Assembly: GCA_026936335.1 (NCBI GenBank) | Contig: JAPMXV010000015.1 | Location: 248,001 to 312,000 of the forward strand | Length of the DNA stretch: 64,000 bases | Direction: 5' to 3' | Source: Mantamonas sphyraenae STR306 | Taxonomy: Eukaryota > Protista > CRuMs | Shown here: piece by piece, positions 1-27,579 of the stretch | How the letters are laid out: the number at the start of each line of letters is the position of its first letter | How positions within the stretch are numbered: the stretch's first letter is position 1 | Program-made: the position numbers and the translations under genes | Notes under the pieces: model-generated | The model's input: only the letters and a program-made list of their open reading frames with translations | The model's database searches: none | What the model was told of the DNA's origin: nothing

Positions 1-1000
1 AAGGGCGTTGGAGGGCGGTGGCGGGCAACTGCGTCAGCTGGATCTGCAGTGGCTGCGTTTGAACAGCGTGTTGCAGAGAAGGTTTCGGGAGAGTGGAGAA
101 TCGATGATGTTGGGATTGTGTGAGGCGTTGCAGGGACACACGCAGCTGGAGATGGTTGGATTGGGCATGGAGTTGGATACGAAGGAGGCAACAGCGCTGG
201 CGACGGCGTTGGAAGGGATGAAGGGTCTGAGAGAGGTGTGCTTGCCGCATGGAAGCACATCGGATGAAGGAATGATTGCAGTGGCGGATGTGCTGCGTGT
301 GCATCCGACAGTGGTGCAGGTGACGTTGGGATCGTACTTGAAGGAACGAGTGAGCGATGAGGTGGGTGATGCACTGTTGAGGATGGTAGAAGAGAATGAG
401 AGGTTGGTAGAGGCAATTGGACCTTGGGCAAAGAGAGATGTGAACATGGAGGTGCGGGAGAAAGTGTTGAAGGCAGTGGAAGGACGTGTGCGGCTGCAGC
501 GAATTGGGGGATATGGGGATGGTTTTGAAGCAGCGTTTCGGAAGAAGAAGAACAGTGCACAGAGATTGGTGAAGGCGGAGAGTGTGGATGCGGTGCGGGA
601 GGAGCTGGAGAGGGGATTGTGGGTGAACACGCGTGTGTTACGGGGATGGGAAGAAGGGGAGTGGGTGGTGGAGAATGTGTTGGTGAAGGGGAATGTGGAG
701 GTGTGGGAGGTGTTGGAGGAGTATGGGTTGCGGGAGGAGTTGACAGAGTGGGAGAAGGAGCAATGTGGGGAGATTGTGAGGGAGAAGGGTGTGTGGAGGA
801 AGGAATGGCATTGGGTGATGGGTGAGGAGGTGGATGAGAGGATAGAGGTGGCACTGGTGATGAACATGGAGGAGAGAGATGTGATGTTTGAGGCAGGTGG
901 GATGGAGGGGTATGTGGAAGAGACGGGGTGGGAGGGATGGGTGACACTGCCGGATGAGGTGATGGAGAGAGTGGTGAAGTGGTTGGGGGAGGGGTCATGA
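1..1000 (+). CDS. LRR (RNI-like)-ankyrin-like-C-terminal F-box-like family protein, 5' part outside window
   Basis: Near-identical to 1788-2784 (period ~1787 bp). LRR motifs (LRQLDLQWL, LREVCL) and the family tail WVTLPDEVMERVVKWL; stop TGA at 998-1000. Confidence 0.8.
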   Translation, partial: RALEGGGGQLRQLDLQWLRLNSVLQRRFRESGESMMLGLCEALQGHTQLEMVGLGMELDTKEATALATALEGMKGLREVCLPHGSTSDEGMIAVADVLRVHPTVVQVTLGSYLKERVSDEVGDALLRMVEENERLVEAIGPWAKRDVNMEVREKVLKAVEGRVRLQRIGGYGDGFEAAFRKKKNSAQRLVKAESVDAVREELERGLWVNTRVLRGWEEGEWVVENVLVKGNVEVWEVLEEYGLREELTEWEKEQCGEIVREKGVWRKEWHWVMGEEVDERIEVALVMNMEERDVMFEAGGMEGYVEETGWEGWVTLPDEVMERVVKWLGEGS

Positions 1001-1032
1001 TTGTGATGGTTGGCGATGTGTGCACCAACAAA

Positions 1033-2784: not shown

Positions 2785-2830
2785 GGTTGGGTGATGACGC
2801 TGGGGGAGACAATGAAACATTTGAGTCACA

Positions 2831-10200: not shown

Positions 10201-13200
10201 TTGATGTTCACAGATGCAAATGCCTTGAGGCTTTCGCGCTCGTCTTGTTCCTGGTCAACAAACCCGGAAAGACTGTTGGTGTGTTCCACGGCTTTGGTTT
10301 CCGCGGCCTGGGCACTCGCGATGTGATGCTTCATCATCGGCTGGTGGATTCTCAGCGCATTTTCCAGGTGAGCCCTTCCTTTCTTGGCGTTGTCTTTGAT
10401 GATCTTCTCATTCGCGCGGGCAAGGTTAAACTGTTCTTGATACTTTGACTTGTACAAATCCACCTTTGCCTTTTGGGCAGCCACACTGGCAGACGCAGTG
10501 GCAAGTCGCTGTTTGGTGTCCGCGAAAGCTTTTTCGTAATCGGACTTGGGCATGAGCTGCAGATCAATGATGCGCAGTTGCGTGGCGAGAGTGAGAGCCT
10601 GTTGCCGCAATTGATTCCGATGGATGAAAAGGAACATGGCCAACATCTTGTCTTCGCCTCGAGTCTTGGCAAAGGAAGCACGGAGGCCAGCAACAAAAGC
10701 ATTCCTTCGGGCAGCAAAAAGCTGCTTGCGGACCTTGAAGCGTCGATATTTCAACGCCCATGACCCGACTGCTCGAAGCACACGCTGGTCACTTCTGTCC
10801 ATCCATGATTTGTACTTGTACGAGTCATACTTTGGTTCCTTGCCTTGTCGTCCAGAGGCTTCGTAGTGAATTTCACGATTGGCAACCCCACCGCCAAACT
10901 GCTTCACATCAAAGTCGCATCCGGTGTCCTTTTCAATGCGAGTCCATCGGATGCCCACATTCTTCACCATACTGTCGACGGAGAAGAGACGGTTGCTGTC
11001 CAGGACCTGTTGCGTCCTCTCCGCCTGGGCGTCCAGGACCATCTCGTCGTCCAAGTCTTCCACTGAATCGTCCGTGGGCAACAACATCATGTCTTCCACC
11101 AATTGCGCATCGTCGTTGGCAGCATGCAGCATGTCGTGCATGGCCATGGCGCCCATCGTCTGCGGGGACGCCCAGCCCAGCACATCGTTGCTGTCGCGAA
11201 GCACAGGCATCATGGCAAGCAAGTCTGTTGGGATCATTTCCACCAAGCTGGGATCGGTGTGTCTGTTGACGTTGTTGTCGAGCAGGTCGGTTTCTTGCGC
11301 CGCCCGAGTGGTGACCTTGGCACGCTGGGTGGTGGCTTCGTTTTTGAGTCGCTGAAGCTGCTCACTGGTGGGCATGGGAAACTCCACTTCGTACAGTTTG
11401 TGTTTGTACTCAAGCAATTGCACGGATTCGTCGAGCACCGGTGTCCCGAGCACCTCGATTTCAACGCCAAACTTGGGGCGAAACCCTGCACTGATGGTGA
11501 GGGTGTTGCTCGCGGCCACTCCCTGGTTTTGTTCTTTCTCGTGCTCCTCGGGCTCGTTCAGCTTGATCACGTTGTTGTCGACGGACATACACGACGCAAC
11601 GCCTTGCGGCTGGAACTCGGCGACCACAAAGAACTCCATGGCAAAGTGTGGGCCGCTCACATCGTACAAACGAAACTTGAGCACAGGGCGCACGATGAAC
11701 TCCAGTTCGATGCCACCACAGGGTCGGAAGCCGTGTGGTGGCTTCAACGCGGGTGTGAGCTTCAGCGTCTGCACGGGCTTCAGCTGCACCTTTGTGCCCT
11801 TGAATGTGCCCTCAGCACCGATCGCAATGTTGCCGTTGATGGTTGCACCGAGTTTAAACTGGACGCCCGCTTTCATGGTGAAAGAGACGCCGACGTCGAG
11901 GTCGCCACGTGTGAACACCACCACGGTGACCGGACCGATCTGCACCTGGAACGTGTTGAACAGTTTGGTCAACACGGTCTTTTCGCGAGTCCAGTTCAGC
12001 GTACCCGTGACCTGGGCAAAGGCATCGACGTTGCCGTCGAGCTTGGCACCGACAGTGAACTTGCATCGCTTCAACTTGAACTTCTCCAGGCGGAGAGTCA
12101 GCGTGAAGGTCGGGGAGATCTCTGCCTTGCCTTCGAGGACTCGGATGATGAACTCCACAGACACGGTCACCTTGCCCTTGCCCTTGGTTTCGTCTCCCTT
12201 GTCCTTTTCTGCAATGGTGCCGGAGAAATCTTGTTCTTTGACCTCATACCCGACGCCGGGCAACGTTTCGTCCACGTTGAGCTCCGCCGTGCCTCCGTTC
12301 AGCATGTCAAGAGCAAACTTGGCCATTTGACCAGCAACCCGAACTGCAGTTGCGACGACCTCGCCTACCTGTTTCGCCACCTTGGCTACCACCTTGGCTG
12401 TTGCCTTGACCGCAGCCACGGCCGTTTTGGCCATTTCCTTGGCCTTGTTGATGTACTCGGAGGCCATGTTTTTGACCTTGTTGAGCACATTTTGTGTCAA
12501 ACGCACGGCTTGACTGACCAGATTGGTCATACTCTGCGCCAGACTGTTGATTGCGTTGCCAACCTTGTCGACCAAATGCTGGAATGAGTTCTTGACCGCG
12601 TTCCAGGCATTCTTCAACTGGTCGGAAAGCTCGTTGAAGCCCTGAGAGACGGTGCGAACGACACTGCTGATACCCTTCTTGGCTCTTCTCCATGTACGTC
12701 GGAACCACCCACGATCTTGATCGTGGACGTCGACCAGTGCTTCGTTGTCTTGGGGGTCCTCGGGTTCGTCTTCCAAATCTTCGTCCAAATCTTCGTCAAA
12801 ATCGTCGTCATCGCGCACATCGCTTTCTTGCTCTGAAGTCGGAAACTCATCTTCCAGCTCGTCATCCTTGCCGTCTTCGTCCGAGGATGATTGAAAAGCC
12901 GAGACGATGTCGAAATCGCTGGCGTCCACGTCGACTCCTTGGATGCGTGCCTCGGCGACACCTTGGGCCATCAAGCGCGCAGCGTCCAGCACGTACTCGC
13001 GGTGCTTGTTGAAGAACTGGCGAGCAGTTCCCGTCAGCTTGGCGCCGTACTCATCAGCCAGCGCACGCAGCTTGTGGCTGCTGGGGTCGACGTTTGCGAT
13101 CTGCTGCGCTGCCTCCGACACTCGTTTCAGGGCTTCGTGTGCAGATTGATCGTGCGCGTTTGCAGTTGCCACGTAGGTGTGGTCGTGCACCATGTCACGA

Positions 13201-14261
13201 AGCAGCTGCTGCTGCTCGTAGTTGCGTGCTGCCTTGCTGCGATCGCGCACAATGCCAGTCTGCACGTCCTTGATCAGATCAGACACGTCCGTGATCTCTA
13301 CGTGAGTGGTGGCTTCTTCCAGTGCGTCTTCCAGGTCGGCGTTGGCCACTCGCAGATGGTACGGCATGTCCTGTTTGTTGCAAGTCAGCTGCATACCCTT
13401 CTGCCATGGTTGAGCGCCATGGGGATGTTGCACGGCGGTGATCTTGTAGATGCCCGTGGCAATGGAAAACACAGAGCCAACCTCGATGTGTTGGCTGTGC
13501 GCCTGCATGAATTCACACGTGGCGCTGAAAACGCCGTCGCGCGCGTCGCCACCTTCCGGCAGCAGACCCTGTCGCACGAGATCCTCCATGGAACCAGCGT
13601 GCTTCATGAACGTGTACTCGTCCATGTCTTCCACCAAGCCGTTGGCCTGGTGGAATGGCATGTCTCCATCGACGTCGCTGACGTCTTCGTTTGGCGCCAC
13701 GTCAAACTCGTACTCGCCCGATGGGTTGGCATGTGCACGCTGCATGTGCTCCCCCATATGCTTCCCAATCATACTCAGAGTGCCTGAGGGAGAGAGAGCA
13801 TTCACGGGTTTCGCCACACGAGCCAGATGCTCGTGCAAGGGCGAAACGATCTGGAAGAACGCCGCATGTGGGACAACCTTTCCACGCACAAAGGTGCGCA
13901 CAAGCGATGTGCCCTGCAGCGACGCATGCACGGGGTGCTCTCTGAACACCCGATGCGTTGCGTCGGACACTGAGCCGTCGTCGAAGCCGGTGTTCTTCCG
14001 ATAGAGTTCCAGCGAAAAAAAGTCCTCTTCCGAAATTTTCTCGGGGTCCAGTACCACAGCTGGACCTGCGTTGGTCAGGGTGCCCTTCTGAAAGCGTGCA
14101 CGGAGATCCTTCTGAGATGATGGGGTGTCTAGTTGGGTGTCAGGAGCGTTGCGATTCGAGCGATGGACGCCAGGAGGGCCAATTGTCGGGAGAAATGTCC
14201 AGACGCGAATTTTGGATGGGAAAGTGCTGAATTGGTCACTCACATGGAACACCTGGTCCAC
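7236..14261 (-). CDS. Very large (~2340 aa) multidomain protein: acidic/amphipathic helical region, long beta-rich domain, coiled coil, Cys-rich repeats, 4x ~132-aa C-terminal repeat; 5' end uncertain
   Basis: Uninterrupted 7-kb ORF. Cys-rich repeats resemble NWxxSxDRxGxSxC...GLxRS...CC; tandem repeats lie at 7270-8870. The track start is GTG, so the true start is unresolved. Confidence 0.75.
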   Translation of the reverse strand: MDQVFHVSDQFSTFPSKIRVWTFLPTIGPPGVHRSNRNAPDTQLDTPSSQKDLRARFQKGTLTNAGPAVVLDPEKISEEDFFSLELYRKNTGFDDGSVSDATHRVFREHPVHASLQGTSLVRTFVRGKVVPHAAFFQIVSPLHEHLARVAKPVNALSPSGTLSMIGKHMGEHMQRAHANPSGEYEFDVAPNEDVSDVDGDMPFHQANGLVEDMDEYTFMKHAGSMEDLVRQGLLPEGGDARDGVFSATCEFMQAHSQHIEVGSVFSIATGIYKITAVQHPHGAQPWQKGMQLTCNKQDMPYHLRVANADLEDALEEATTHVEITDVSDLIKDVQTGIVRDRSKAARNYEQQQLLRDMVHDHTYVATANAHDQSAHEALKRVSEAAQQIANVDPSSHKLRALADEYGAKLTGTARQFFNKHREYVLDAARLMAQGVAEARIQGVDVDASDFDIVSAFQSSSDEDGKDDELEDEFPTSEQESDVRDDDDFDEDLDEDLEDEPEDPQDNEALVDVHDQDRGWFRRTWRRAKKGISSVVRTVSQGFNELSDQLKNAWNAVKNSFQHLVDKVGNAINSLAQSMTNLVSQAVRLTQNVLNKVKNMASEYINKAKEMAKTAVAAVKATAKVVAKVAKQVGEVVATAVRVAGQMAKFALDMLNGGTAELNVDETLPGVGYEVKEQDFSGTIAEKDKGDETKGKGKVTVSVEFIIRVLEGKAEISPTFTLTLRLEKFKLKRCKFTVGAKLDGNVDAFAQVTGTLNWTREKTVLTKLFNTFQVQIGPVTVVVFTRGDLDVGVSFTMKAGVQFKLGATINGNIAIGAEGTFKGTKVQLKPVQTLKLTPALKPPHGFRPCGGIELEFIVRPVLKFRLYDVSGPHFAMEFFVVAEFQPQGVASCMSVDNNVIKLNEPEEHEKEQNQGVAASNTLTISAGFRPKFGVEIEVLGTPVLDESVQLLEYKHKLYEVEFPMPTSEQLQRLKNEATTQRAKVTTRAAQETDLLDNNVNRHTDPSLVEMIPTDLLAMMPVLRDSNDVLGWASPQTMGAMAMHDMLHAANDDAQLVEDMMLLPTDDSVEDLDDEMVLDAQAERTQQVLDSNRLFSVDSMVKNVGIRWTRIEKDTGCDFDVKQFGGGVANREIHYEASGRQGKEPKYDSYKYKSWMDRSDQRVLRAVGSWALKYRRFKVRKQLFAARRNAFVAGLRASFAKTRGEDKMLAMFLFIHRNQLRQQALTLATQLRIIDLQLMPKSDYEKAFADTKQRLATASASVAAQKAKVDLYKSKYQEQFNLARANEKIIKDNAKKGRAHLENALRIHQPMMKHHIASAQAAETKAVEHTNSLSGFVDQEQDERESLKAFASVNIKRASDKGSRDAKAKLKAMFSTPKMLELRKDARKAQRIRGVAIADLMRLKTLHISEARRTRMRDMIRTMLVDTRKALDKYWNEVNHMLHIARQQGVHKVDGVLVVPSPTAREKQNRDAWARGAFKCYNSNWAASFDRGGLSRCKARSIVSGLTRSACNTLECLEGASCCSVHSKRNEYSLTGSFATKGFYGCSLPGYGIAGFKRVGWCSTLRCMTGLRCVDGLNENKCKNIEVSFTRKGTFSCPAGYGLKAIRRGSNGKNDGLSAVDQFKCCELQDRAPSEAQSTAPVTCKRGNWALSMDRAGVSECPRGYAVHSLFRSSTGKLQGLEWADCCTRNKLNVQTVEADWTKTLSKQGWSSCPAGYSISGFVRGNSNALVGIRKVKCTLGVYKDECKVLSRHMQSQGLYACPSGFGLNAIYRKVASGTMNDITKFKCCKYSAEKMSDPKRQGKMEKARATVRQIHGTVFNQLKRISKHTPSRNHHCHVNGKTEVQRLACLLTGYVGRKEVTSAVVYNSQTAGLFKKAMLAYYDYYKAIGKENVVGGKNHACFGKYHHQWNKRLACLAGSPTQTAEERREEERRKKMEKALATVRQIHDTVFNQLMQISKHTPSRNHHCHVNGKTEVQRLACLLTGYVGRKEVTSAVVYNSQTAGLFKKAMLAYYDYYKAIGKENVVGGKNHACFGKYRHQWNKRLACLAGSPTQTAEERREEERRKKMEKALATVRQTHGTVFNQLKRISKHTPSRNHHCHVNGKTEVQRLACLLTGYVGRKRVTSAVVYNSRTAKMFKHVMHVYYDYYKAIGKENVVGSKNHACFGKYRHQWNKRLACLAGSPTQTAEERRREERAVATVRQTHGMVFNQLMQISKHTPSRNHHCHVNGKTEVQRLACLLTGYVGRKEVTSAVVYNSQTAGLFKKAMLAYYDYYKAIGKENVVGGKNHACFGKYRHQWNKRLACLAGSPTQTAEERRREEERRKEERNKLLKRVWRGRTRW
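7270..8870. repeat. Coding tandem repeat, 4 units of 378-396 bp
   Basis: The unit ...QRLACLLTGYVGRKEVTSAVVYNSQTAGLFKKAMLAYYDYYKAIGKENVVGGKNHACFGKY... recurs with periods 378, 396 and 396 bp. Confidence 0.95.
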
Positions 14262-14990: not shown

Positions 14991-16423
14991 ATGAGTGAGT
15001 GATGCCCTGGGGCAGACAATGGAATGTTCGGGTTTGCAACACGCACGAAAACAGGTCTGCTGCGGGCATTGGAAGATGGAGTGGATGATGTGCGTGCATT
15101 CCTTGAAAAGCAACATGGTGCCGTGAGAGTGTGTTGGACAAACGTCACCAAAGAGCAACTGCAGACCATCCAAGAAGCGAGCAAAGGGTTGGAGGTGGAC
15201 GAACTCGAGCTGTGGGGCAAAAACGTGGAACTTTGCACGTTGATTGATTTCCTCACGTGCTTTTTTGCCAATCACAACGATGTCAAGGTGTTGCAGTTGA
15301 CGGACATGCAGTGGGGAGGAGGGAAAGCGGAAGACGAGCAGGCCCTCTTTCAAATGCTCGCCGCAATCGGCGGCTCACTGCGTGTGCTCACTGTGAACTT
15401 CAAGACGATTGCTGGTCAACGGGTCACAGTGTGGGAGGGACTGTTTGACGCCGTGGCCGCTGCTTGCCCCGCTCTGGAAGAGCTGGAAGTCGACAAATTC
15501 ACCCTTGACGCGTCACTGGGTCGCATGCTGCAAGCATGCACACGGTTACGAGCGTTGACACTTGGGAAAACAACAGATGGCAAGGATGATGAGGTGTCAC
15601 ACGAGCTGGGGGAAATGATATCGGCGAGTTCCCTGCGTTCGCTCACGGCATCGTGCCCCGTGACAAACATGGCAGGCATCCTGGCCTGTCCAACCCTGCG
15701 CGAGTTGACCCTAACATCCTTGGTGGCATCTGAAGACGAAGTGGCGGTGTTGGCAGAGGCATTGGAGGGCGGGGGGTCGCAGTTGCGTGTACTGGATTTG
15801 TCCGGCGTGCACGCGACCGCCAAGCTAGTTCTGCAAGCAGGAGCAAAGTTGGACCACGATGGACGCTCAGCGATGATGATGCTGGATGTGTGCAACGCGT
15901 TGCGAGGTCACACACAGTTGGACACACTTGGACTGGGGCTGCCTGTGGACGCAGAAGAGAGCTCGGTGTTGGCAGAAGCGATCACAGGCATGAAGGAGCT
16001 GCGAGAGTGTCGGCTTCCAATGGGAAGCACATCAACTGAAGGGTTGGGCCCGCTGGCCAATGCAATGCGAGTGCACCCGACGCTGGAGCGGGTCAATTGC
16101 GGTTCCATGGTTGTGGCAAACATGTCCATCGAGGTCAGCGACGCACTGTTGGGGATGGTGAGCGAGAACACGCGGCTGCAGTTTGTACTGGGGCCGTGGG
16201 TGCGTTCGCATGCCAACGAGTTTTTGCGCACGTATTGTGAACGTCAGCGCTCTGTGCACAGCGAAAATTTCAAACAAACTCCACACCAGAAGCCATCACA
16301 AACAGTCACATGCCCACGTCGGGAAAGCGGAGATCAGCATGCTACGGGCAGACCTCGCCACTGTTATGATCTTGTCACGTGGACGTCAAAAGCTGCCTGC
16401 TGCGCGGAGTCGCATCAAACACA

Positions 16424-17029
16424 ATGTCATCATCCAGCAGCCAAGATGACGCCGTAGATGGCATTGTTGAATCCATCTTAGGGCAGCAGGACGTCCTTGC
16501 TGCCAGATCGGTTCGTGTGGACGACTTACCGCCCAGCGTGCTACAGGTTGTTGCTGCGTTCGATGGTGACGCACAAGCGGTTGTCGAGGTTACGATGGAC
16601 GCCACTACCCAAACAAACAAGGTGTGGCGCCCCAGCAAGGCAGTGCTGCTCAAACACATGCGCAAAATGGCTGGAGAGGAGACTGGCGACCTGCCGAGTA
16701 CCGAGCATACCGAGCAAGCGTCTCCGAGCCATTCATTGAACGCCCCTGCCCTGGCAAGCAGGATTTCCGAGGTTGTCGACCCCGGAGGAGACATGGTGGT
16801 GGTCTCCGTGGATGGTGGTGTCCTGTGTAAGGGTTCAGCGACTGGCTGGCGCCATAACACAACGGGCAAACTGACGCCGCTGCACTTTTTCCGCCCCTCC
16901 ATCCACAGACAAGAGTATTTGGCTGCACGCAAACCTGGAGGAGAAAACACAAGAGCAAGTGCGCACGCACATCAAGGCCAAGGCCGACAAAGTCGCATGC
17001 GAGTTGACCGCGTTGCAAACGGAACTTGA
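16424..17029 (+). CDS. Probable N-terminal part of the Fanzor ORF (frameshifted) or a separate small ORF
   Basis: The ATG at 16424 (MSSSSSQDDAVDG) opens an ORF overlapping the long ORF, whose frame is open from ~16875 without an early ATG. A single-base shift at 16875-16960 would fuse them. Confidence 0.5.
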   Translation: MSSSSSQDDAVDGIVESILGQQDVLAARSVRVDDLPPSVLQVVAAFDGDAQAVVEVTMDATTQTNKVWRPSKAVLLKHMRKMAGEETGDLPSTEHTEQASPSHSLNAPALASRISEVVDPGGDMVVVSVDGGVLCKGSATGWRHNTTGKLTPLHFFRPSIHRQEYLAARKPGGENTRASAHAHQGQGRQSRMRVDRVANGT

Positions 17030-20000
17030 AGCGCAAGGTGTCAATGGCGCCGTGATGCTGTTCTTGGATCACCACGCTGCCCCCGAAGACTTTGCAGGCA
17101 TGCAAACCCACTTCAAGGACAAGGTGCATGTTCAGGATCTGTTGAGGCATATGAGCCGCTCCGCATCAAGCAAGAAGCCGCCCAGCTATGAGGTACGTGG
17201 AATTTTGCCCATGTTCTCTCATTTCCCTCGCTCACACCCATCCTCCACCCAGGACATGCTGTGGCAATGCAGGTCGTACCTGACGTATGGCTACTTGCAC
17301 GAGTACCTTTCTCAGTCCATCCAGGAGCACGACTGGGAGGCAACGGAGCCGGCGACCACTGGAGTGTTTTTGTCGCCAGCACCCAAAGAGCTGGACTCTT
17401 TGGAAGCCGAGCAGGCTATGTCTGAATTCTTCTCCGCTCGTTATGGCCATTATCAACACGTATTTGTCCATACCGACTCTGATGTGGCTCGCTTGGCGCC
17501 AGACATCGCAAAGTCATTTTGGAGCGTGCATCCCACAGCACCGCAAAGGGCATACGAGGTGACCCAGTTGACCAGATACAAGCTCAACACCTTCGCTCTG
17601 CTCACCGGGAAGCGCGACGGTATTCCCTTGCGCAACCCTCTCCTGGCGAGGTACTCCAATCTCCTATCCAAGGCGTGCGGCGTTGCGGGCACACAGCTTA
17701 TCGTACCGACGGGCTTCGAGCCCCCGAGCACAGGCAACGATCTCTCTGTCGTTCACATCGACTCTCTCAAGCAGCTGATCGAACACGTGTCGAAGTCATT
17801 CACGGTGAGGGAGAGCAAGCTGCTTGCCGACTACAAAGGCTTGACTGCAGCATCGAAGCGACTGCTCGAGTATGATCTGTATGACAGTGCAGTGTACATG
17901 GACTCTCCTTGGGTGAGTGTGCTTTGCAAGCAACGGAAGAGCGAGCGACTCCAAAACCAAACACTCAAGCCCAACGCCGCCCATTTGAAGGGTGTGTATC
18001 AGCTGATGGTGGAACAAAGCAAGGGCGACAAGGGTGCCATGGTCCGGGCTTTTGTGTCCTTCTTCACGCAGAGCCTGCGGAAAGAGTCGACCGCTCATCT
18101 GATCGATTCCTGGGCAACGTTCTCCAACGCTAAGCGCCAACTGACCTACGTAATCGTCCGACAAGCCTTCTCTGTCGTTGTGGATGAGAGTGGGAATGTG
18201 TTGGATGTTGTGATCGTCGATGGCGAGGAGCCCAAGCGTTTTCACGGGGTCAGTGGGCTGGATACAAGGAACCACAGGAAGACTGGGAGGGCACGGAAGA
18301 CACTGATGGTGTTGAACAACGCGTATGATGTGCTTCTGGATCTGGAAGATGCACACATCGATGCCCAGGACGCAGGCGGTGGTGTCGAGTTTGTGGTGGG
18401 AGACACGCCTCAAGGCGACAACCGCTCTCCCACGCACACATGCACCGTGCTTGGGGACGCCCAAGGGGTCGCAGAGGAGGCCAGGCACCTGTTGGAGCGT
18501 CTCAAAGCTTCAGTAAGCCTGCAAGTGAGGATTACGATCAAGTCGACCCGGCTGACGCACGTTTGCGTGATGGAACTTGAGTGCGGCGACGACGTCGTTT
18601 CAAGCGCCTTTTGCGATAGCATGGCCAACTACTGGGACACAGTCGACGCTGACCTCATTGAACAGGCCCTGTTGCTCCGCGACAAGATGTACACAGCCAC
18701 GTTGGACAAGGCCACGCGCAAGCGGCTCAAAGCAAACGCACGTGGCCATGGCCTGCTACCTCTGTACCACTCGCTGTTGTACAGAAAGCAGCGTCGCATG
18801 AGCGCCAGCGAGAAGCGCGAGGAGGGTCTGCGAACCCTTGAAGCAGACACGCTTGCATTGTTTGCCCGCCGCCTTTCCAAAATCGGCTCCAAAGACGTGC
18901 TCGCTGCCTTTGCAGAGGTCGGTGCATTGGACACAAAGACGGCACCGGATCACCTGTGTGGTCTGGTGGACTCGGACGTCTCCATCATCCCTCTGAAGGC
19001 CGATGTCGCCAGCAGCAAGGGCGCTGAATGGTCGGAAGAGACGAAGGGCGTTGTTGCGGAGCTTTCGGCTGCGACACACGCGTTTGCGAGTGCAACACTG
19101 GTGATGTTGAACGCATTTGTGCGTCTTCTTCCTTATCTCCTGCAGGACGCCATTCGCTCTGTTCCAAAGAAGCGTTCATCACGAGCTGGAGTCGCAGGAT
19201 CTGGAGTGCAGGTCGATTCTCCGCTGTGGACTCTGCAATTGGGCAAGCTGACGAGAGGTGTTGCGAACGCGCTGGCACAGAGCCACGATGGCCAGGTGTT
19301 GGTGCTTGACGTGCAGGCCGCAGGACGTGCAGCAGGGTGGAGTTCAAACGAGAACTGGTCGTTCAAGAAGATTCCGTCTGCGATCCATTTTGTGGATGAC
19401 CCCGCCGCTGCTGGTTGTGTGTTGTTGGTGGAAGCCTTGGACGAGAACACCAAGCGCGGTTTGGCTGCAGTCGGCAAACACGGAGAGAGCTGTGTGCAGG
19501 GCATGAAGGTGCTTGTCGAGCATGCAGCGCGTGGATGCGCGCTTCAGGCCCTATTGCCAGGAGCAGTCACTTGCTTGGATGTGGAGGCAGCGAGCCAGGT
19601 GATTGCAGACCACCTCAACGACAACGACAAGAAAACCACAAAGCCAAGGTCGGCAGCTATGGTGCGCAAGCGTCTGAAGGATCTGCGTGTGACGCAGATT
19701 TTTGAGTCCGACGGCTCCCCAGTTGTTTCCTCCGCCTCCGCCTCATCGTCCTCATCCTCATCCTCATCCTCATCCTCATCCTCATCCTCATCCTCATCCT
19801 CATCCTCATCCTCATCCTCATCCTCATCCTCATCCTCATCCTCAGCCACAGGCACATCTGATGGAGCCGCGGCAGATTCCGACACCGAGGCAGATGCAGA
19901 CACCGAGGCTCCGACAGTGGCAGCCCTGCAGGCGTTGAAGACAATTCGCTTCACCGCCGACCATCTGTATGCGGATGGCGACGTGAAAGACCTTGTGCAT

Positions 20001-21470
20001 GCTCAGAAAAATTTGAAAGAAGATGAAGAGCTGCGGAACCTGCCACGACAGGTCAACGCAGAGGCGCAGGTCATGTACACGCCGACAGACTACTGGAACA
20101 TCCTCCGCACATGGAAGAGCACCGGAAATGCCACCGTGGACAGGCTTCAGGCATGGGCAACCCAATGCAAACAGCTTGCGGATCTCAACCAGATTGTCCA
20201 GGAAGAGGAGGACACGCTGTGTGCCAACATCGACTACTTGCAAAAGCTTGTTGAGGCATGGTTATCATGTAACAGCCTCGCTCAGCCTCATGCTAGGACA
20301 ACAGCACCACCCCTGATGTCACTCATCTTCACGCCGGATTTGCTTTCTGCGTCTCCCAGCCAGCTGTCTGGCTATTGGGGCAGTGCTGCGCGACACATGG
20401 GCACGTGGAAGTACTGCCGTCACAAGCAGGCACCGTTGTTGTCCCTCCTGAGCCTGGTGGAACCGTACCTGGATTCCAAGGTACGCGGCAGCTTTTTCTT
20501 TGACGAGCTCTTCGAGCCCTCGCAACGCAGCATCGCGTACCTGCTGCCATTTCTGGAAAAGTCGCACAACGCCGCTGTCATCCTGACAGCATCTGTGCGC
20601 GTGCTGGGACGGAAACGAACGGGACGCCTGCTGCGTCTTTGCGGCCACAGCGCCGTACACGTGACTGAGATCCTCAACACACTTCCCCGGGAGCAGGCAT
20701 TTGCTCCAAAGGGAGCGCTGTTTGAGAGACAGGTGCTGTTCCGCAAGACCCCAAAGGCATGGCTGAACGATGCGGTGATGTTGATCCTTGACGGCGGTAA
20801 AACCAAGAACCATGCAGCGCTCTTTGCCCCTTCTGCTGAGCCCGAGTTCCGACGAGGTTCACGTGTGTACGGCACGCTCGTGCGCGTGTCCACTACCTCG
20901 TACAGGGGAGAGTTGGTGCAACGACGTGGGCACAAGCGCACAAGCGACGAACACACGCCAGCATCCAAGGCTCAATCAGCTCGCTGCAAGAATGCGCAGG
21001 CTCAGCGATGCTACACGGCGGCAAAGTCATATGCAAAGACGTTGCACAGGAAGCATGTGCTGACGGTGGCGGGGCCACAAACCTGGACGGGAGGCAACTT
21101 CACCTCCTGGACCTCGAAGCTTGCATTGCACACCCTGGTGCTCATTGTTTCCGAGTACAACACCACGAAGAACCACTCACGGTGCCATGGAGAAGTTCAG
21201 TACTGCCATGCCTTGGGCAGCACGAAGAAATCGATGGGACGCTGGGTTGGTTGCAAAGAGTGTTGCGCTCAACACGGGTGTCGCAGTGCCACGGCAGGGG
21301 CACGTGCAGCGGTTCAGGCGTGTGCAGGGGCCCACAGCATGCGAGTCATCAATCGAGATGTCAACGCTCTGCTCAATATCGCGATCTTGGCCGTGTGCCT
21401 CCTCACGCAAGGAAGACGACCAGCTGGCCTGCAGCGAATCCACAAGGACGACGACGACAACGACAACTGA
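16959..21470 (+). CDS. Fanzor (eukaryotic TnpB-like RNA-guided RuvC endonuclease) with very long N-terminal extension
   Basis: RuvC-I LILDGG (D at 20790), shifted RuvC-II VLIVSEYNTTK (E at 21153), zinc finger HSRC...CKEC, and RuvC-III INRDVNALLNI (D at 21357), all within the last ~230 aa. Confidence 0.85.
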   Translation: MRTHIKAKADKVACELTALQTELEAQGVNGAVMLFLDHHAAPEDFAGMQTHFKDKVHVQDLLRHMSRSASSKKPPSYEVRGILPMFSHFPRSHPSSTQDMLWQCRSYLTYGYLHEYLSQSIQEHDWEATEPATTGVFLSPAPKELDSLEAEQAMSEFFSARYGHYQHVFVHTDSDVARLAPDIAKSFWSVHPTAPQRAYEVTQLTRYKLNTFALLTGKRDGIPLRNPLLARYSNLLSKACGVAGTQLIVPTGFEPPSTGNDLSVVHIDSLKQLIEHVSKSFTVRESKLLADYKGLTAASKRLLEYDLYDSAVYMDSPWVSVLCKQRKSERLQNQTLKPNAAHLKGVYQLMVEQSKGDKGAMVRAFVSFFTQSLRKESTAHLIDSWATFSNAKRQLTYVIVRQAFSVVVDESGNVLDVVIVDGEEPKRFHGVSGLDTRNHRKTGRARKTLMVLNNAYDVLLDLEDAHIDAQDAGGGVEFVVGDTPQGDNRSPTHTCTVLGDAQGVAEEARHLLERLKASVSLQVRITIKSTRLTHVCVMELECGDDVVSSAFCDSMANYWDTVDADLIEQALLLRDKMYTATLDKATRKRLKANARGHGLLPLYHSLLYRKQRRMSASEKREEGLRTLEADTLALFARRLSKIGSKDVLAAFAEVGALDTKTAPDHLCGLVDSDVSIIPLKADVASSKGAEWSEETKGVVAELSAATHAFASATLVMLNAFVRLLPYLLQDAIRSVPKKRSSRAGVAGSGVQVDSPLWTLQLGKLTRGVANALAQSHDGQVLVLDVQAAGRAAGWSSNENWSFKKIPSAIHFVDDPAAAGCVLLVEALDENTKRGLAAVGKHGESCVQGMKVLVEHAARGCALQALLPGAVTCLDVEAASQVIADHLNDNDKKTTKPRSAAMVRKRLKDLRVTQIFESDGSPVVSSASASSSSSSSSSSSSSSSSSSSSSSSSSSSSSSSSSSATGTSDGAAADSDTEADADTEAPTVAALQALKTIRFTADHLYADGDVKDLVHAQKNLKEDEELRNLPRQVNAEAQVMYTPTDYWNILRTWKSTGNATVDRLQAWATQCKQLADLNQIVQEEEDTLCANIDYLQKLVEAWLSCNSLAQPHARTTAPPLMSLIFTPDLLSASPSQLSGYWGSAARHMGTWKYCRHKQAPLLSLLSLVEPYLDSKVRGSFFFDELFEPSQRSIAYLLPFLEKSHNAAVILTASVRVLGRKRTGRLLRLCGHSAVHVTEILNTLPREQAFAPKGALFERQVLFRKTPKAWLNDAVMLILDGGKTKNHAALFAPSAEPEFRRGSRVYGTLVRVSTTSYRGELVQRRGHKRTSDEHTPASKAQSARCKNAQAQRCYTAAKSYAKTLHRKHVLTVAGPQTWTGGNFTSWTSKLALHTLVLIVSEYNTTKNHSRCHGEVQYCHALGSTKKSMGRWVGCKECCAQHGCRSATAGARAAVQACAGAHSMRVINRDVNALLNIAILAVCLLTQGRRPAGLQRIHKDDDDNDN
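19743..19843 (+). repeat. (TCATCC)n hexanucleotide repeat encoding poly-Ser inside the Fanzor ORF
   Basis: Directly visible; the reading frame is preserved. Confidence 0.95.
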
Positions 21471-21625
21471 CCATCATCGACAACGACTGGTACTTATCTA
21501 GGACCGGCGTAATACGCTAACGCTGCCACAGGAATCACGTTTCTAGGAGAGCGAGTTTTTTCTTGACTTTGTGGGAACGTGTGCACAGCGCGCAGCGCAC
21601 AGCAATACGTTGAGCGAGAGGCAAG
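21471..21625 (+). ncRNA. Candidate omegaRNA: scaffold to the element right end plus a guide from the flank (~21606-21625)
   Basis: 135 nt lie between the Fanzor stop and the right end. There is a hairpin GCGT-AAT-ACGC near 21507-21517 and a long G:U-rich stem-loop at 21536-21581 (cacgtttctaggag...ctttgtgggaacgtg). The position matches TnpB/Fanzor omegaRNAs; boundaries are inferred. Confidence 0.55.
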
Positions 21626-22107
21626 GAGGTGCGATTGCAGAGCATGGCTCAGTGGGAACAGAGAGCACGCACAGAGGTTGGTAAAGGCGGAGAGTGTGGA
21701 GGTGGTGCGCGAGGAGCTAGAGAGGGGCCTGGGAGTGAACACGCGGATGGTGGGAGCGCGGCAAAGGGAATGGGTGGTGGAGAATGTGTTGGTGAAGGGC
21801 GACTTTGATATCTGGGAGGTGTTGGAGGAGTATGGGTTGAGGGAGGAGTTGACAGAGTGGGAGAGGGAGCAATGTGGGGACGTGGTGAGCCAGAGGGGTG
21901 TGTGGAGGAAGGAATGGCATTGGTTGATGGGTGAGGAGGTGGATGAGAGGATAGAGGTGGCACTGGTGATGAATGGGGAGGAGAGAGATGTGATGTTTGA
22001 GGCAGGTGGGATGGAGGGGTATGTGGAAGAGACAGGGTGGGAGGGATGGGTGACACTGCCGGATGAGGTGATGGAAAGGGTGGTGCGTTGGGTCGCCCAC
22101 ACGAAGC

Positions 22108-23823
22108 ATGTTTGAGGAGGAAAATGTACTCGCATGTGTGGACAACGAGGACAAAGAGGGCCTGGAGCAGCTTCTGTTGACCAGTGGCGGCCTTTGGATG
22201 GAAGACATTGATCTGGAAGGCCCCAGGATGCAGGTTCTTGCGGAGCTTGCACGCGGGTTGCCGTGTGTGGGGCTGGTGGCATTCAGCAGCGTGACCTTCG
22301 ACGACGACGTGTCGTGGTATGCTGGGTTGGAATCCTTGTTGATGGATGCGCCAGAGGCGTGCATGTTGGTCATGCAGAACATGGGTAGTGAATCGCTTTC
22401 AAATGAGGCGGCGCTTTCCCTGGCACACGCTCTGCAACACGGCAAACACCAACTGTCGATCGTGGATTTCTCCAGTACGATGTCAATCGATGATGCAGCA
22501 TTTGGGCACATGGCCAACGCACTGACAACGTGGCCCTCGTGGCAGCTGGAGAGCCTGGAGCTCGGTGGAACGGACATCTCGGACGAGAGTGTGCCTGCAC
22601 TGAAGCAGGTGATTGCCCATTCGACGCATCTGCACTCATTGGATGTGTCTCGCACCAACTTGTCTCTGACGGGACTGGAGAAGCTGGGCAAAGCGATGGG
22701 TGGCTCCGGGTCGCTGCGGAAAGTGACGGTGGGCCGGCAGCACATGCGCAGGGTGGATGGTGAGCCAACGATGGGCGCTGTGGTGGATCGCATGTTGGGA
22801 GGGGTCGCTGTGCGAGAGGTGCAACTGTGTGGGATGTTGGACAGGGTGGCGGAGAAGGACCTTGCGCGTGCGTTGCTGGATCGGGGTGAGCATCTCCACA
22901 TGCTGAAAATGGACAAGATGCAGCTGGAAAGGGCAGAGAGTGAGGAGAAAGGGATGGATTTGATGGATGCGGTGGTGCAGATGCCCCATCTGGACACATT
23001 GCATGTGGATGCGATTCGTATGTCAAACACGGCGCTGGAGAGGCTTGCCAGTGGGTTGAACGAGGGCATGCGAGAACTGCGTGAGCTGGAGGTGCTGAAC
23101 GCGAGTCAGGTGGGGATGTGTGCGATTTGTTTTGCGGTTGCCACGCATCCGGGTCTGATTGGGTTTACGATTGCAGGGGCGACAATGCAAATAGCCGACG
23201 ATGTGGAACGGGCACTGGAGCACATGGTGAGCACGAACAAGCGACTGCAGTACGTTGCAGGGCCGTCTCTGGTGAATCCGAATGATAAAATGCGGATGGA
23301 GGAAGTGCTGCGCGGAAGCAAGACCATGCTCAGGGCGAACCTCGGCGTGGGGAGAACAACTGAGTTTGCACACAATGTGTCACGGTGCAACGACCTGTTT
23401 GAGGCCATGAAGGTGGAGGACCTGGAAGGGATGCGGGAGATCCTGGACAGCGGTGTGTGGGTGAACACGTTGATGGGGCACCTGTCAACAAATTCACTGA
23501 GCCAGTCAACAATACGTCATGGCAAAACAGAAGCGTGGAGGGTGTTGGAGGAGTATGGGTTGCGGGAGGAGTTGAACGAGCGGGAGCGGGAGCGATGCGA
23601 AGCTGTGGCACTGCAGACGAGGAGATGGGACCCGGCGTGGCATTGGGTGATGCGTGAGGAGGTGGATGAGACGATAGAGGTGGCACTGGTGATGAACATG
23701 GAGGAGAGAGATGTGATGTTTGAGGCGGGTGGGATGGAGGGGTACGAATCGACTGGGGAGTGGTGGACACTGCCGGACGAGGTGATGGAGAGGGTGTTGA
23801 GGTGGCTGGCGGTGGGATCGTGA
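22108..23823 (+). CDS. LRR-ankyrin-like-F-box-like family protein
   Basis: RNI-like LRRs (LESLELGGTDISDESVPAL), an ankyrin-like segment (MREILDSGVWVN) and the family tail. ATG overlaps the upstream ORF by 8 nt. Confidence 0.8.
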   Translation: MFEEENVLACVDNEDKEGLEQLLLTSGGLWMEDIDLEGPRMQVLAELARGLPCVGLVAFSSVTFDDDVSWYAGLESLLMDAPEACMLVMQNMGSESLSNEAALSLAHALQHGKHQLSIVDFSSTMSIDDAAFGHMANALTTWPSWQLESLELGGTDISDESVPALKQVIAHSTHLHSLDVSRTNLSLTGLEKLGKAMGGSGSLRKVTVGRQHMRRVDGEPTMGAVVDRMLGGVAVREVQLCGMLDRVAEKDLARALLDRGEHLHMLKMDKMQLERAESEEKGMDLMDAVVQMPHLDTLHVDAIRMSNTALERLASGLNEGMRELRELEVLNASQVGMCAICFAVATHPGLIGFTIAGATMQIADDVERALEHMVSTNKRLQYVAGPSLVNPNDKMRMEEVLRGSKTMLRANLGVGRTTEFAHNVSRCNDLFEAMKVEDLEGMREILDSGVWVNTLMGHLSTNSLSQSTIRHGKTEAWRVLEEYGLREELNERERERCEAVALQTRRWDPAWHWVMREEVDETIEVALVMNMEERDVMFEAGGMEGYESTGEWWTLPDEVMERVLRWLAVGS

Positions 23824-23849
23824 TGGTTGGCGATGTGTGCACCAACAAA

Positions 23850-25592
23850 ATGGCTCTTCTTCCCCGGGTGCCGACCGCTCTACAGCGAGCGTTGGAAGGC
23901 AGTGTGGAGGATGTGCGAGAGGAATTGATGAAGACTGTATTTCAGGTGAATGTGAAATGGACCAATGTCTCAGAGGACGAGCTGGCCAAGCTGCAGGAAG
24001 CGTGCGAGGGAGTGGAAGTGCGAGCGTTGTCGCTGAACTGTGGCAAAGTGCCGATGGGGTCTGTGGGGGCATTTCTGGAGGGGTGCATGGCACAGCAGAG
24101 GCACTTGCAGGTGTTGAAGTTGTACCAATTGGCCCAGGGAGAAGGAGAGGGCCAGGATGGACCGGCAAAGTTGTTCCAAGCGCTGGAGCTGGTGGGAGGG
24201 GCGCTTCGTGAGTTGATAGTGAAGCGGTCACTGGATGGATGGAGAATGCGATCGAGGAATTCGTGGAAGAACGCATTGATTTATGCGGTGGCCAATGGGT
24301 GCCCGATGCTGGAGGACTTGCGGCTGGACGAATGCCTGAGTGCGGAGGACCTTGGACGGGTGCTGCACTCTTGCACGAGGCTGAAAGTGTTGCGCCTGAC
24401 AAGGTTCGGATTGGAGAGTGAGGAGGAGACGCTGGAGATGGCACGGCTGATCGGGGAGAGCAGGTTGCGTGTGGTGAAGCTTTCCTTGCAGAAATCGTGG
24501 TCAAACCTTGGCACCATCGTCGGGGCGATGCTTGGATGTGGGACACTGAGGGAATTGGTTCTCAATGGCACTTTGACGGAAGAAGAAGCAGTGAAAGGGC
24601 TGGGAAGGGCGATGGAGGGTGGTGGTGGGCAACTGCGTCAGCTGGATATCCACAGGCTGCGTTTGAACAGCGTGTTGCAGAGAAGGTTTCGGGAGAGGGG
24701 AGAATCGATGATGTTGGGATTGTGTGAGGCGTTGCAGGGACACACGCAGCTGGAGATGGTTGGATTGGGCATGGAGTTGGATACAAAGGAGGCAACAGCG
24801 CTGGCGACGGCGTTGGAAGGGATGAAGGGTCTGCGAGAGGTGTGCTTACCGCATGGAAGCACATCGGATGAAGGAATGATTGCAGTGGCGGATGTGCTGC
24901 GTGTGCATCCGACAGTGGTGCAGGTGACGTTGGGATCGTACCTTGAGGAGCGAGTGAGCGATGAGGTGGGTGATGCACTGTTGAGGATGGTAGGAGAGAA
25001 TGAGAGCTTGTTAGAGGCAATTGGACCTTGGGAGGCAAGGGATGTGAACATGGAGGTGCAGGAGAAAGTGTTGAAGGCAGTGGAAGGGCACGTGCGGCTG
25101 CAGCGAATTGGGGGATTTTGGTATGGTGTTGATGCGGCGTTTGCAAAGCAAAAGAACAGTGCAAAGAGATTGGTGAAGGCGGAGAGTGTGGATGCGGTGC
25201 GGGAGGAATTGGAGAGGGGATTGTGGGTGAACACGCGTGTGTTACGGGGATTGGAAGAAGGGGAGTGGGTGGTGGAGAATGTGTTGGTGAAAGGGGATGT
25301 GGAGGTGTGGGAGGTGCTTGAGGAGTATGGGTTGCGGGAGGAGTTGACAGAGTGGGAAAAGGAGCAATGTGGGGAGATTGTGAGGGAGAGGGGTGTGTGG
25401 AGGAAGGAGTGGCATTGGTTGATGGGTGAGGAGGTGGATGAGAGGATAGAGGTGGCACTGGTGATGAACATGGAGGAGAGAGATGTGATGTTTGAGGCAG
25501 GTGGGATGGAGGGGTACGAATCGACTGGAGAGTGGTGGACACTGCCGGATGAGGTGATGGACAGGGTGGTATGGTGGCTGGGGATGGAGTAG
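23850..25592 (+). CDS. LRR-ankyrin-like-F-box-like family protein, close paralog of 1033-2784
   Basis: Highly similar to 1033-2784 but with the GYESTGEWWT tail variant. An in-frame ATG at 23823 overlaps the upstream stop (TGATG). Confidence 0.8.
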   Translation: MALLPRVPTALQRALEGSVEDVREELMKTVFQVNVKWTNVSEDELAKLQEACEGVEVRALSLNCGKVPMGSVGAFLEGCMAQQRHLQVLKLYQLAQGEGEGQDGPAKLFQALELVGGALRELIVKRSLDGWRMRSRNSWKNALIYAVANGCPMLEDLRLDECLSAEDLGRVLHSCTRLKVLRLTRFGLESEEETLEMARLIGESRLRVVKLSLQKSWSNLGTIVGAMLGCGTLRELVLNGTLTEEEAVKGLGRAMEGGGGQLRQLDIHRLRLNSVLQRRFRERGESMMLGLCEALQGHTQLEMVGLGMELDTKEATALATALEGMKGLREVCLPHGSTSDEGMIAVADVLRVHPTVVQVTLGSYLEERVSDEVGDALLRMVGENESLLEAIGPWEARDVNMEVQEKVLKAVEGHVRLQRIGGFWYGVDAAFAKQKNSAKRLVKAESVDAVREELERGLWVNTRVLRGLEEGEWVVENVLVKGDVEVWEVLEEYGLREELTEWEKEQCGEIVRERGVWRKEWHWLMGEEVDERIEVALVMNMEERDVMFEAGGMEGYESTGEWWTLPDEVMDRVVWWLGME

Positions 25593-25626
25593 GGTTGGGT
25601 GATGGTGCGATAGCGGACGCAAATCA

Positions 25627-25794
25627 AGCGTCGATCAAGCGATCGAAGTCGCACTCGTGATCAACAACAGCGAACGCGACCTCCTCTTTGATGCAGGCGA
25701 CATGCAATTGTACACACCCACTGCACTGTGGATTACCATTCCCGATGAGATCCTGCACCGCATCATCCGTCACCTCACCTCACTCCAACAATGA
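25627..25794 (+). pseudogene. Orphan C-terminal tail of the family (no start codon)
   Basis: Translates as SVDQAIEVALVINNSERDLLFDAGDMQLYTPTALWITIPDEILHRIIRHLTSLQQ*, with an in-frame stop upstream at 25600-25602. Confidence 0.75.
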
Positions 25795-25815
25795 ACCCAA
25801 CCAAAACCTCACCCA

Positions 25816-27579
25816 ATGGATGACGACTCCGAACCCGCCGTCCTCGCCCTAGCTCGCTCAGGGGACACTGAGAAAGTGCGCAAGCACTTCTCCATGCACG
25901 GTGGCATCATTCTTGACCACACACACTTGTCAACCGAGGACCTGGACATCCTGGCAACCGCGTGCTCCGACGACGATTCCTCCCTCCGCCGTCTCGAACT
26001 CATCCGCATCACCACAGACACCACCTCATCCCTGTTTACATTCCTGGCTCGCATCATTGCCGGCGCACCCAAGCTTCACACCATCCACCTGGACGTGGAG
26101 GCCCACTTGAACGTTGAGGACGACGACGAAACACAGGAGTGTCTCGAACGCCTTGTCACCGCGTTGCAACAACACCCCACGGGCATCCTCCAGTTCTCTG
26201 TCTTTAATTCGGCCATGTTGACCCCGGATGTGTTTGACGGGCTCGTCACAGGCCTGACCACAGCCAACCACTGTGCGTTGGAAGAGCTCCAGCTCCAACT
26301 GGTGCCACTGGGAGACAAGAGCGTGCCTGCACTCGTCACCCTCCTTCAGAGCATGCCGTACCTGGCTTCTCTTACCATGAGCTCGTGTGGCCTTACGCTG
26401 GGAGGCAAGGTGGAGCTGGCAGAGGCAATCGGCAAACACTGCCCTCGCCTGAGCAAACTCATCTGGTCACTGGACCACGAGCGGCATCCAAATGACAAAC
26501 ACTTGGTTGAAGACGGCACAAAGAGGGTGCTCCAGGCCATCCTGCAGGCACCCAGACTCATCAACCTCGACGTTTCCGACATCCCGCACACCGTCCACGA
26601 CGAGTCTCTTGTTTCTGAGGCACTGGCACAGCACGGACACAACCTGCGCCTTTTGTGTCTGCGTTCCTTGAGGGGAAGGGTTGCCAGGACAAGGTCGAGG
26701 GACACTGGCAACATGCTGGTGAAGGCACTCCCGCACCTGACCAAACTGCACACGTTGCACCTCAACGGCAAACCATGGACGTTCAATGCATCTCTTGCGC
26801 TGTGTGATGCACTCCAACACATGTCCGAGCTGCGTGTGCTCTCATGTCCTCGAATCGTCCACCCGGACACACGCATCACCCTCGCAGACGCCATACGCAC
26901 ACATCCGGCCCTGCGCGACGTCTCCACCGAGTGGCTGGACGTCGACTCGTGGGAAGCCGACGTTGCAGACGCTGTCAATCGCATGCTCTCTGAAAACACT
27001 CGCCTGCAAGCCCTGCCGCTGGGCAGAAAGTGCCCTCCAAGAAACCCCAAACTGCAATCCTTGGTCGACTCCATCCACAGTGTCAATCTGCAAACCCTTT
27101 TCAACTACCCACAACCCAAAGTGATCAAGGACAATGTCAACCGCGTGCACGCGCTGTTCAGCGCACTCGCAAAGGGAGACATCGACGCCATGCGTGCCAT
27201 CCTCGACAAAGGCGTCTCGGTGAACGTCATGCGAGGCAGCCACAGGTCTCTCTTTGAGGCTGCCATCATGCGCAACCAGGAACAGGCATGGCTCCTGCTG
27301 GAAGAGCACGGCCTTCGCGACGAGCTCACATCCTTTGAGCGGGAACAATGCCTGCACAGAATGCAGACGCAGGGCAGGTGGAACCCCGTGTGGCATTGGT
27401 TGCTCGATGACGACGTGGACGAGAGGATAGAGGTGGCACTGGTCATGAACGGGATTGAGAGAGATGTGATGTTTGAGGCGGGTGGGATGGAGGAATACGA
27501 ATCGACTGGAGAATGGTGGACACTGCCAGACGAGGTTATGGACAGGGTGTTGAAGTGGTTGGGCAATGGACAATCATGA
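25816..27579 (+). CDS. LRR-ankyrin-F-box-like family protein
   Basis: LRRs, an ankyrin repeat (LFSALAKGDIDAMRAILDKGVSVN) and the family tail. Confidence 0.8.
   Translation: MDDDSEPAVLALARSGDTEKVRKHFSMHGGIILDHTHLSTEDLDILATACSDDDSSLRRLELIRITTDTTSSLFTFLARIIAGAPKLHTIHLDVEAHLNVEDDDETQECLERLVTALQQHPTGILQFSVFNSAMLTPDVFDGLVTGLTTANHCALEELQLQLVPLGDKSVPALVTLLQSMPYLASLTMSSCGLTLGGKVELAEAIGKHCPRLSKLIWSLDHERHPNDKHLVEDGTKRVLQAILQAPRLINLDVSDIPHTVHDESLVSEALAQHGHNLRLLCLRSLRGRVARTRSRDTGNMLVKALPHLTKLHTLHLNGKPWTFNASLALCDALQHMSELRVLSCPRIVHPDTRITLADAIRTHPALRDVSTEWLDVDSWEADVADAVNRMLSENTRLQALPLGRKCPPRNPKLQSLVDSIHSVNLQTLFNYPQPKVIKDNVNRVHALFSALAKGDIDAMRAILDKGVSVNVMRGSHRSLFEAAIMRNQEQAWLLLEEHGLRDELTSFEREQCLHRMQTQGRWNPVWHWLLDDDVDERIEVALVMNGIERDVMFEAGGMEEYESTGEWWTLPDEVMDRVLKWLGNGQS

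Follow-up and report, generated by a model that had tools for sequence, protein, structure and literature searches.

Introduction

What does a transposon that holds no transposase gene do with a Fanzor of about 1,634 amino acids, and what accounts for the extra length of that protein? Both questions are raised by a 5371-bp element in a 64,000-nucleotide stretch of the genome of Mantamonas sphyraenae STR306, a unicellular marine eukaryote (contig JAPMXV010000015.1, positions 248,001 to 312,000 of the forward strand; hereafter the window, in whose numbering features are given). A Fanzor is an RNA-guided DNA cutter, the eukaryotic cousin of CRISPR-Cas12, and to our knowledge the known Fanzors are single-nuclease proteins of 500-800 amino acids. 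As judged from its sequence, the giant Fanzor of this element appears to owe its extra length in part to a domain resembling the FEN1/XPG nucleases, which in the gene is interrupted by two introns. We regard as evenly balanced the fuller reading, in which the element is a non-autonomous Tc1/IS630-mariner-type transposon, FEN1/XPG-like and Fanzor1-type nucleases are joined in its single protein, and the protein serves restorative homing with resection.

The Fanzor nuclease lobe

The gene is predicted to be spliced, with two introns, and its parts are as follows.

16424-16826 (+): predicted exon 1, ending in the FEN-like strand-1 Asp motif VSVDGG (16802-16819)
16827-16908 (+): predicted intron 1, 82 nt, GT-AG, phase 1, with the same position and phase in four families
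16909-17192 (+): predicted exon 2, with the FEN-like strand-2 Asp motif FLDHH (17061-17075)
17193-17252 (+): predicted intron 2, 60 nt, GT-AG, phase 0
17253-21470 (+): predicted exon 3, 1,405 codons plus stop, holding the FEN-like I region, the middle and the Fanzor nuclease lobe
17403-17621 (+): FEN1/XPG-like I-region motifs, EAEQ at 17403, HTDSD at 17469 and GKRDG at 17607 (H2TH/H3TH Asp)
20781-21365 (+): Fanzor RuvC triad, in the order D(GG), alternative Glu (Ealt), zinc finger HxxC/CxxC, RD

The predicted length of about 1,634 amino acids is the sum of the exon codons, the exons having been examined one by one. It falls within the 1,500-1,680 amino acids of a first-pass annotation, which had described one giant open reading frame (ORF); the size stands, and the single frame gives way to a predicted gene with two conserved introns. 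A phase-1 GT-AG intron directly 3′ of the D-x-G motif, followed by a phase-0 intron after the next exon, is common to four families, and the second intron, in frame in the window copy, is frame-shifting in one sister and likewise in three other families. The M. sphyraenae genome is diploid and its genes are mostly single-exon (PMC10492846). REC and WED are expected in the middle of the protein, a stretch of about 900 amino acids that contains a poly-Ser tract.

A protein search of the genome recovered 24 related Fanzor loci in about eight diverged families, a lower bound because the search missed the giant Fanzor of an autonomous DD34E transposon family described below; 22 of the 24 have open frames of 1,437-2,087 amino acids, and 20 entered the RuvC alignment. 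The LILDGG (20781), VSEYNT (21147), HxxC (21174), CxxC (21252) and RDVN (21354) motifs lie in the Fanzor arrangement of a D-E-D RuvC nuclease that the first-pass annotation had described, and D, E and RD are invariant in a 14-row alignment of the 20 aligned loci, with the zinc ligands also conserved, so that an intact-looking triad is supported by sequence comparison. Fanzors carry two fingerprints, a near-exclusive DPG at RuvC-I and Ealt, in which the catalytic Glu precedes the zinc finger by six residues (PMC10711439); the second is present as ExxxxxxHxxC, with His as the first zinc ligand.

The predicted model of the last 570 amino acids is confident across the RuvC core. Its best Foldseek matches are SpuFz 8gkh (E 6e-4) and 9ceu, and the top 26 rows of a structural search with VIA are all Cas12/TnpB/Fanzor (Z 14.3-8.4), which bears out the fold expected from the motifs in the first-pass annotation. 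The family profile matches the mimivirus Fanzor2 9b0l in the PDB (E 2.4e-4) and 325 library proteins, only five of them at E <1e-10; PF07282 is present in most of the long library matches that were scanned. A 927-amino-acid library protein (P0002) is the closest long relative of the Mantamonas RuvC lobe outside the genome (E 2e-12). The C-terminal lobe is almost certainly a Fanzor. As to its type, Foldseek leads to SpuFz/PpFz, the PDB sequence match leads to Fanzor2, and a quick tree was built without named references; on the predicted model the Fanzor1 type is favoured.

The N-terminal domain

FEN-like PIN domains are recognised by Asp residues after S1, S2 and S4 and before H5, by two acidic residues before H4, and by an Asp in the H2TH/H3TH (PMC5499597). 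The N-terminal third of the predicted protein contains VSVD, FLDH, EAEQ, HTDSD and GKRD in order, which together make up the set of seven acidic motifs known from FEN1/XPG-like 5′ nucleases and agree with that pattern in motif order and conservation, the positions being assigned by alignment rather than by structure. Three of the five invariant columns of the N-terminal alignment are FEN-motif Asp residues. The ratio of nonsynonymous to synonymous substitution (dN/dS) was calculated against the two most diverged sister copies, with one of the dS values close to saturation. It is lowest in RuvC (0.08-0.12), followed by the FEN I region (0.14-0.17) and the middle (0.20-0.32), so that the whole protein appears to be under purifying selection.

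The same pairing of a FEN-like part with a Fanzor is seen more clearly on two unrelated public metagenomic contigs (L032 and L038:5532-9682). P0035, a protein of 1,224 amino acids (run SRR7244345), has both parts in a single ORF. On L038 (ERZ26871208), XPG-like exons, which match the P0035 N-terminus by tblastn (E 2.8e-26), lie directly upstream of the Fanzor P0010, an adjacent arrangement for which splicing into one protein is putative. The sole PDB match of the L038 I-exon is an archaeal FEN-1 (E 0.06), an I-region profile from P0035/L038 matches host FEN1/XPG/EXO1-type genes (probability 90.5, E 1.3e-6), and ESM Atlas features place the P0035 N-terminus near PF02739 and viral clusters (0.94 for PF02739). 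P0035 and P0010 group together in the quick tree, apart from the Mantamonas set (SH-aLRT 96). No terminal inverted repeat (TIR) was found around L038, and scans of viral and metagenome contigs found nothing.

Profiles built from Mantamonas sequences and from these external fusions, in alignments without shared rows, could be compared directly. The Mantamonas-only profile aligned to the P0035/L038 I-region profile with the motifs in register and a score of 20.3-23.2, against shuffled maxima of 15.9-17.8, and it beat all 60 shuffles per test, weakly (E 0.005-0.015). Directly against host FEN1/XPG/EXO1-type genes it reached no significance. A profile that included P0035 had the 5′ exonucleases of Pol I and FenA among its five matches (E 0.2-0.3), which lends weak support. 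Single-sequence searches of Pfam, the PDB and a set of 5.8 billion proteins, and ESM Atlas features for the N-terminus of the window copy, gave no informative match. Taken together, motif order, conservation and the external fusions make the N-terminal domain very probably FEN-like, with moderate statistical support for the window copy itself.

Insertion site and sister copies

The element and its surroundings are laid out as follows.

15024-16234 (+): 5′ part of the host gene, up to and including the TA target; leucine-rich repeat (LRR)-like family with tandem paralogs
16233-16234 (+): left TA target-site duplication (TSD), read from the sequence; possible core of the target-adjacent motif (TAM)
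16235-21605: insert, 5371 bp, starting TTG and ending CAA
16235-16261 (+): left imperfect TIR
21471-21607 (+): candidate omegaRNA scaffold (3′ untranslated region, right TIR and TSD), structured, z -2.5
21579-21605 (+): right imperfect TIR with CAA terminus; it has TGTGCACAGC, which the autonomous DD34E family carries in the same register at its own right end
21606-21607 (+): right TA TSD
21608-22115 (+): remaining, 3′ portion of the host gene, of which the first 15-20 nt would act as guide (from PMC10711439)

The boundaries that the first-pass annotation had proposed for a TA-flanked insert with imperfect TTG...CAA repeats can be read directly at the junctions, TA|TTG at 16233-16237 and CAA|TA at 21603-21607. 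When the insert and one TA are removed, the 572-amino-acid host ORF is restored in frame as had been described; aligned with the neighbouring paralog at 23850, it shows 48% identity across 589 columns (E 3e-153), and the empty site is therefore real. The left and right TIRs agree at 17/27 positions, with a best core of 14 nt at 93%.

A search of the genome found five further copies of the element, of about 97, 95 (internally deleted), 92, 81 and 70% identity. Comparison with other copies had been suggested as a check on the boundaries, and it upholds the right end, which is CAA in every copy, and upholds the left end in part: it is exact in three of the five sisters, whose duplications are TA, TA and TG (TA in 3/4 and TG in 1/4 of the exact-end copies), and the two diverged sisters begin TA|CAG and TA|CTG, with TA flanking both ends. 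The internally deleted sister (L004/L007, C35:264234-267774) has lost element positions 173-2018, including the FEN-like domain; it has a TG duplication and an intact RuvC frame. That the insertion is recent, as first proposed, is plausible from the intact host frame and the perfect TSD, although the nearest sister is at just 96.5% identity.

At least eight divergent LRR-like genes, each coding for about 570-600 amino acids and all with a W-rich motif at the C-terminus, stand in tandem at 1-4564 and 15024-29306 of the window, and the host gene is one of them. Within the window there is also a 2,341-amino-acid ORF (7236-14261, minus strand), for which Pfam gave only weak matches, under the cut-off; it has Cys-rich repeats and, at its C-terminus, several repeats of about 100 amino acids that are nearly identical to one another.

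A candidate mobiliser and a candidate guide RNA

No DD34E/D transposase was found in the element among the ORFs and Pfam matches of the window, and the element is therefore classed as non-autonomous. The first-pass annotation had noted no recognisable transposase, which holds for the element; the genome, however, contains a candidate. This is a separate DD34E Tc1/IS630 family with 10 left-end matches in the genome, of which an autonomous copy (C14:82330-91315; L041, L045, L047) is 8,986 bp long and has TTG...CAA ends, a TG duplication and an intact DD34E ORF (PF13358, E 5e-27). A second copy, C17:156473-165117, has a TA duplication. The left end of this family matches that of the element at 20/27 positions, the sole such match among 127,946 window positions. 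In addition, five of the 19 DDE_3 matches in the genome are co-oriented and 5.3-6.3 kb upstream of giant Fanzor loci (5/24 loci). Because the genome holds an autonomous DD34E family with matching ends, and five of 24 loci have a transposase upstream, the absence of a transposase from the element is no puzzle, and this DD34E family is probably the best candidate to mobilise it in trans. The family carries a Fanzor of its own, in an open frame of about 2,000 amino acids with DPG, E and RD present and an internal tandem repeat.

Two other features of transposon ends and transposase genes were recorded. Other Fanzor families (L014-L027) have CTG, CAG or GAA at the 3′ end before the target dinucleotide, with degenerate outer bases. 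Exactly 15 nt from that end they have in common a GCGCGCTG-like octamer, to which a transposase might bind. Perfect or near-perfect palindromes lie near two other DD34E transposase genes (L043:2722-2759, 38 nt; L044:814-864, 51 nt).

At the right end of the element, the 137-nt segment that starts at the stop codon and includes the TSD is predicted to fold more stably than shuffled sequences (z -2.5; sisters -1.9 and -3.2). It has a long stem in common with the sisters, and compensatory pairs are only 2/33, indicating little covariation; Rfam gave no match for this RNA. In Fanzor1 the omegaRNA spans the TIR and TSD and runs on for about 15 nt of flanking sequence (PMC10711439); by analogy, 21471-21607 is a candidate omegaRNA scaffold. 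The upstream flanks of the six copies end in CGTA, CATA, GATA, AGTG, GTTA and TTTA, which suggests a short TAM ending in TA.

Discussion

The arrangement of ends, target, candidate RNA and two nuclease domains can be placed in a mechanism of restorative homing, for which there is experimental support in prokaryotic TnpB and which has been proposed for Fanzors (PMC13565253). A DD34E transposase would move the element in trans into TA or TG. A transcript of the right end that reaches into the flank would serve as the omegaRNA and guide the Fanzor to the empty site beside TA, and, once the transposase had excised the element, the RuvC nuclease of the Fanzor ribonucleoprotein would cut that empty site again. 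The FEN-like domain would then trim or resect the 5′ ends, and homologous repair of the resected ends from the sister chromatid or homolog would copy the element back. The resection role of the FEN-like domain we hold at slightly less than an even chance. The broader proposal, that the protein stands for a class of RNA-guided effectors, so far undescribed and present in several eukaryotic lineages, that combine programmed cutting of a target with resection of the ends in a single chain, steering repair to homologous recombination and driving their own transposon, is put forward more tentatively still.

Several observations weigh against this interpretation. Pfam gives no match for the FEN-like part of the window copy, the AlphaFold model of the N-terminus is poor (pLDDT 45), the only relevant match in a fold search with it was human Exo1 over the H2TH region, which was weak (Z 3.9, rank 34), and a profile test of exon 2, with one row out of frame, reached no significance. 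In the Fanzor of the autonomous family most of the FEN acidic residues are seemingly lost, as judged by eye, and the FEN-like domain may therefore be dispensable. RuvC-I reads DGG in the family of the element, in place of the DPG fingerprint; of 14 other loci, 11 have DPG and 3 have DTG, and DGG is read as a family-specific change, so that the element's Fanzor is filed as a variant rather than a typical member. The right ends of the element and the autonomous family agree at 16/27 positions, a level that 36 window positions reach and that is not significant alone, as is also true of the 10-mer that they have in common in register. Finally, engineered exonuclease fusions lower the indel rates of MmeFz2 (PMC12923547).

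The alternative that survives best, though we consider it unlikely, is that the FEN/PIN-like domain acts on RNA, either releasing or maturing the 5′ end of the omegaRNA from the long mRNA or removing the RNA of the R-loop. RNases do occur in the PIN-like superfamily, and one member of the XPG_I cluster, the herpesvirus vhs protein, degrades mRNA (PMC5499597); moreover, the candidate scaffold starts at the stop codon, within the mRNA. Yet the domain retains the H2TH/H3TH Asp motif of structure-specific DNA 5′ nucleases, and ordinary Fanzors of 600-800 amino acids function without any such domain (PMC10711439, PMC11423790). A further alternative, also rather unlikely, is simply an oversized Fanzor whose FEN-like domain lacks catalysis or assists in DNA binding, or whose motifs resemble those of FEN by chance. 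The weak direct statistics for the window copy, the eroded look of the FEN motifs in the C14 family and the replacement of E-A-E by A-D-D or S-A-D-D in some families all fit this idea, but the Asp residues are invariant columns between families that are only about 20% identical, dN/dS is low, and independent fusions have clearer FEN signatures.

Two further possibilities concern the protein as a whole. The giant protein could itself be the transposase, its RuvC and FEN nucleases excising and inserting the element, possibly under RNA guidance, and it is the sole gene of a family whose six copies are dispersed and keep intact frames; this is improbable, however, in view of the 2-bp TA/TG duplications and TIRs that fit the intact DD34E family, the DDE transposases that five related loci have of their own, and the transposase-less Fanzor mariners with TA TSDs already on record (PMC3627910). 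A RuvC that is catalytically dead or not RNA-guided, in a protein that is a passenger or regulator, would be in keeping with the DGG variant but is very improbable, as the catalytic triad and the zinc ligands are intact, RuvC has the lowest dN/dS range of the protein, DPG is present at 11/14 other aligned loci, and the structured 3′ end is conserved.

Comparison with known systems

RNA-guided enzymes would gain a new architecture in a natural, selected fusion of a Fanzor with a 5′ nuclease. Such a fusion makes testable why cut-and-paste DDE transposons keep a Fanzor, an open question (PMC13565253). Homing and the choice of repair route are open to assay with single point mutants, since ends, target and both active sites are defined, as are a candidate guide and a candidate transposase acting in trans. 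Should the domain indeed resect after cutting, editors that favour homologous repair would have a natural model in it.

Fanzors in Tc1/mariner elements, with or without a transposase, are already known (PMC3627910), and the literature searched, which included few subscription papers, held no description of a natural Fanzor-5′ nuclease fusion, of a Fanzor of such size or of a Mantamonas Fanzor; the apparent novelty thus lies in the size and in the predicted natural fusion. The element resembles Fanzor1 systems (SpuFz1, GtFz1, PpFz1) in its D-Ealt-zinc finger-RD order, in its residence in a eukaryotic TIR transposon and in a candidate omegaRNA that overlaps the right TIR and TSD. Those proteins are 600-700 and at most about 800 amino acids long (PMC11423790, PMC10711439), whereas that of the element is predicted at about 1,634, with DGG for DPG and an N-terminal FEN-like domain. 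With the Fanzor1-bearing Tc1/mariner elements PGv-1, PUl-1 and the transposase-less PUl-4 (PMC3627910) it shares the TA TSD, TIRs, and autonomous and non-autonomous members, and it differs from them in its TTG...CAA ends with degenerate outer bases, in tolerating a TG target and in its giant two-domain cargo. The seven acidic motifs in order and the H2TH/H3TH Asp are those of the FEN1/XPG/EXO1 and Pol I 5′-3′ exonuclease family, but the domain is too diverged for Pfam and is joined to an RNA-guided nuclease. The nearest parallels to that joining are engineered: T5 exonuclease or TREX with MmeFz2 (PMC12923547) and T5Exo-Cas12j (bioRxiv 10.1101/2025.09.16.676532) also place an exonuclease and a RuvC nuclease in one chain, whereas the fusion in M. 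sphyraenae would be natural, multi-copy and under purifying selection.

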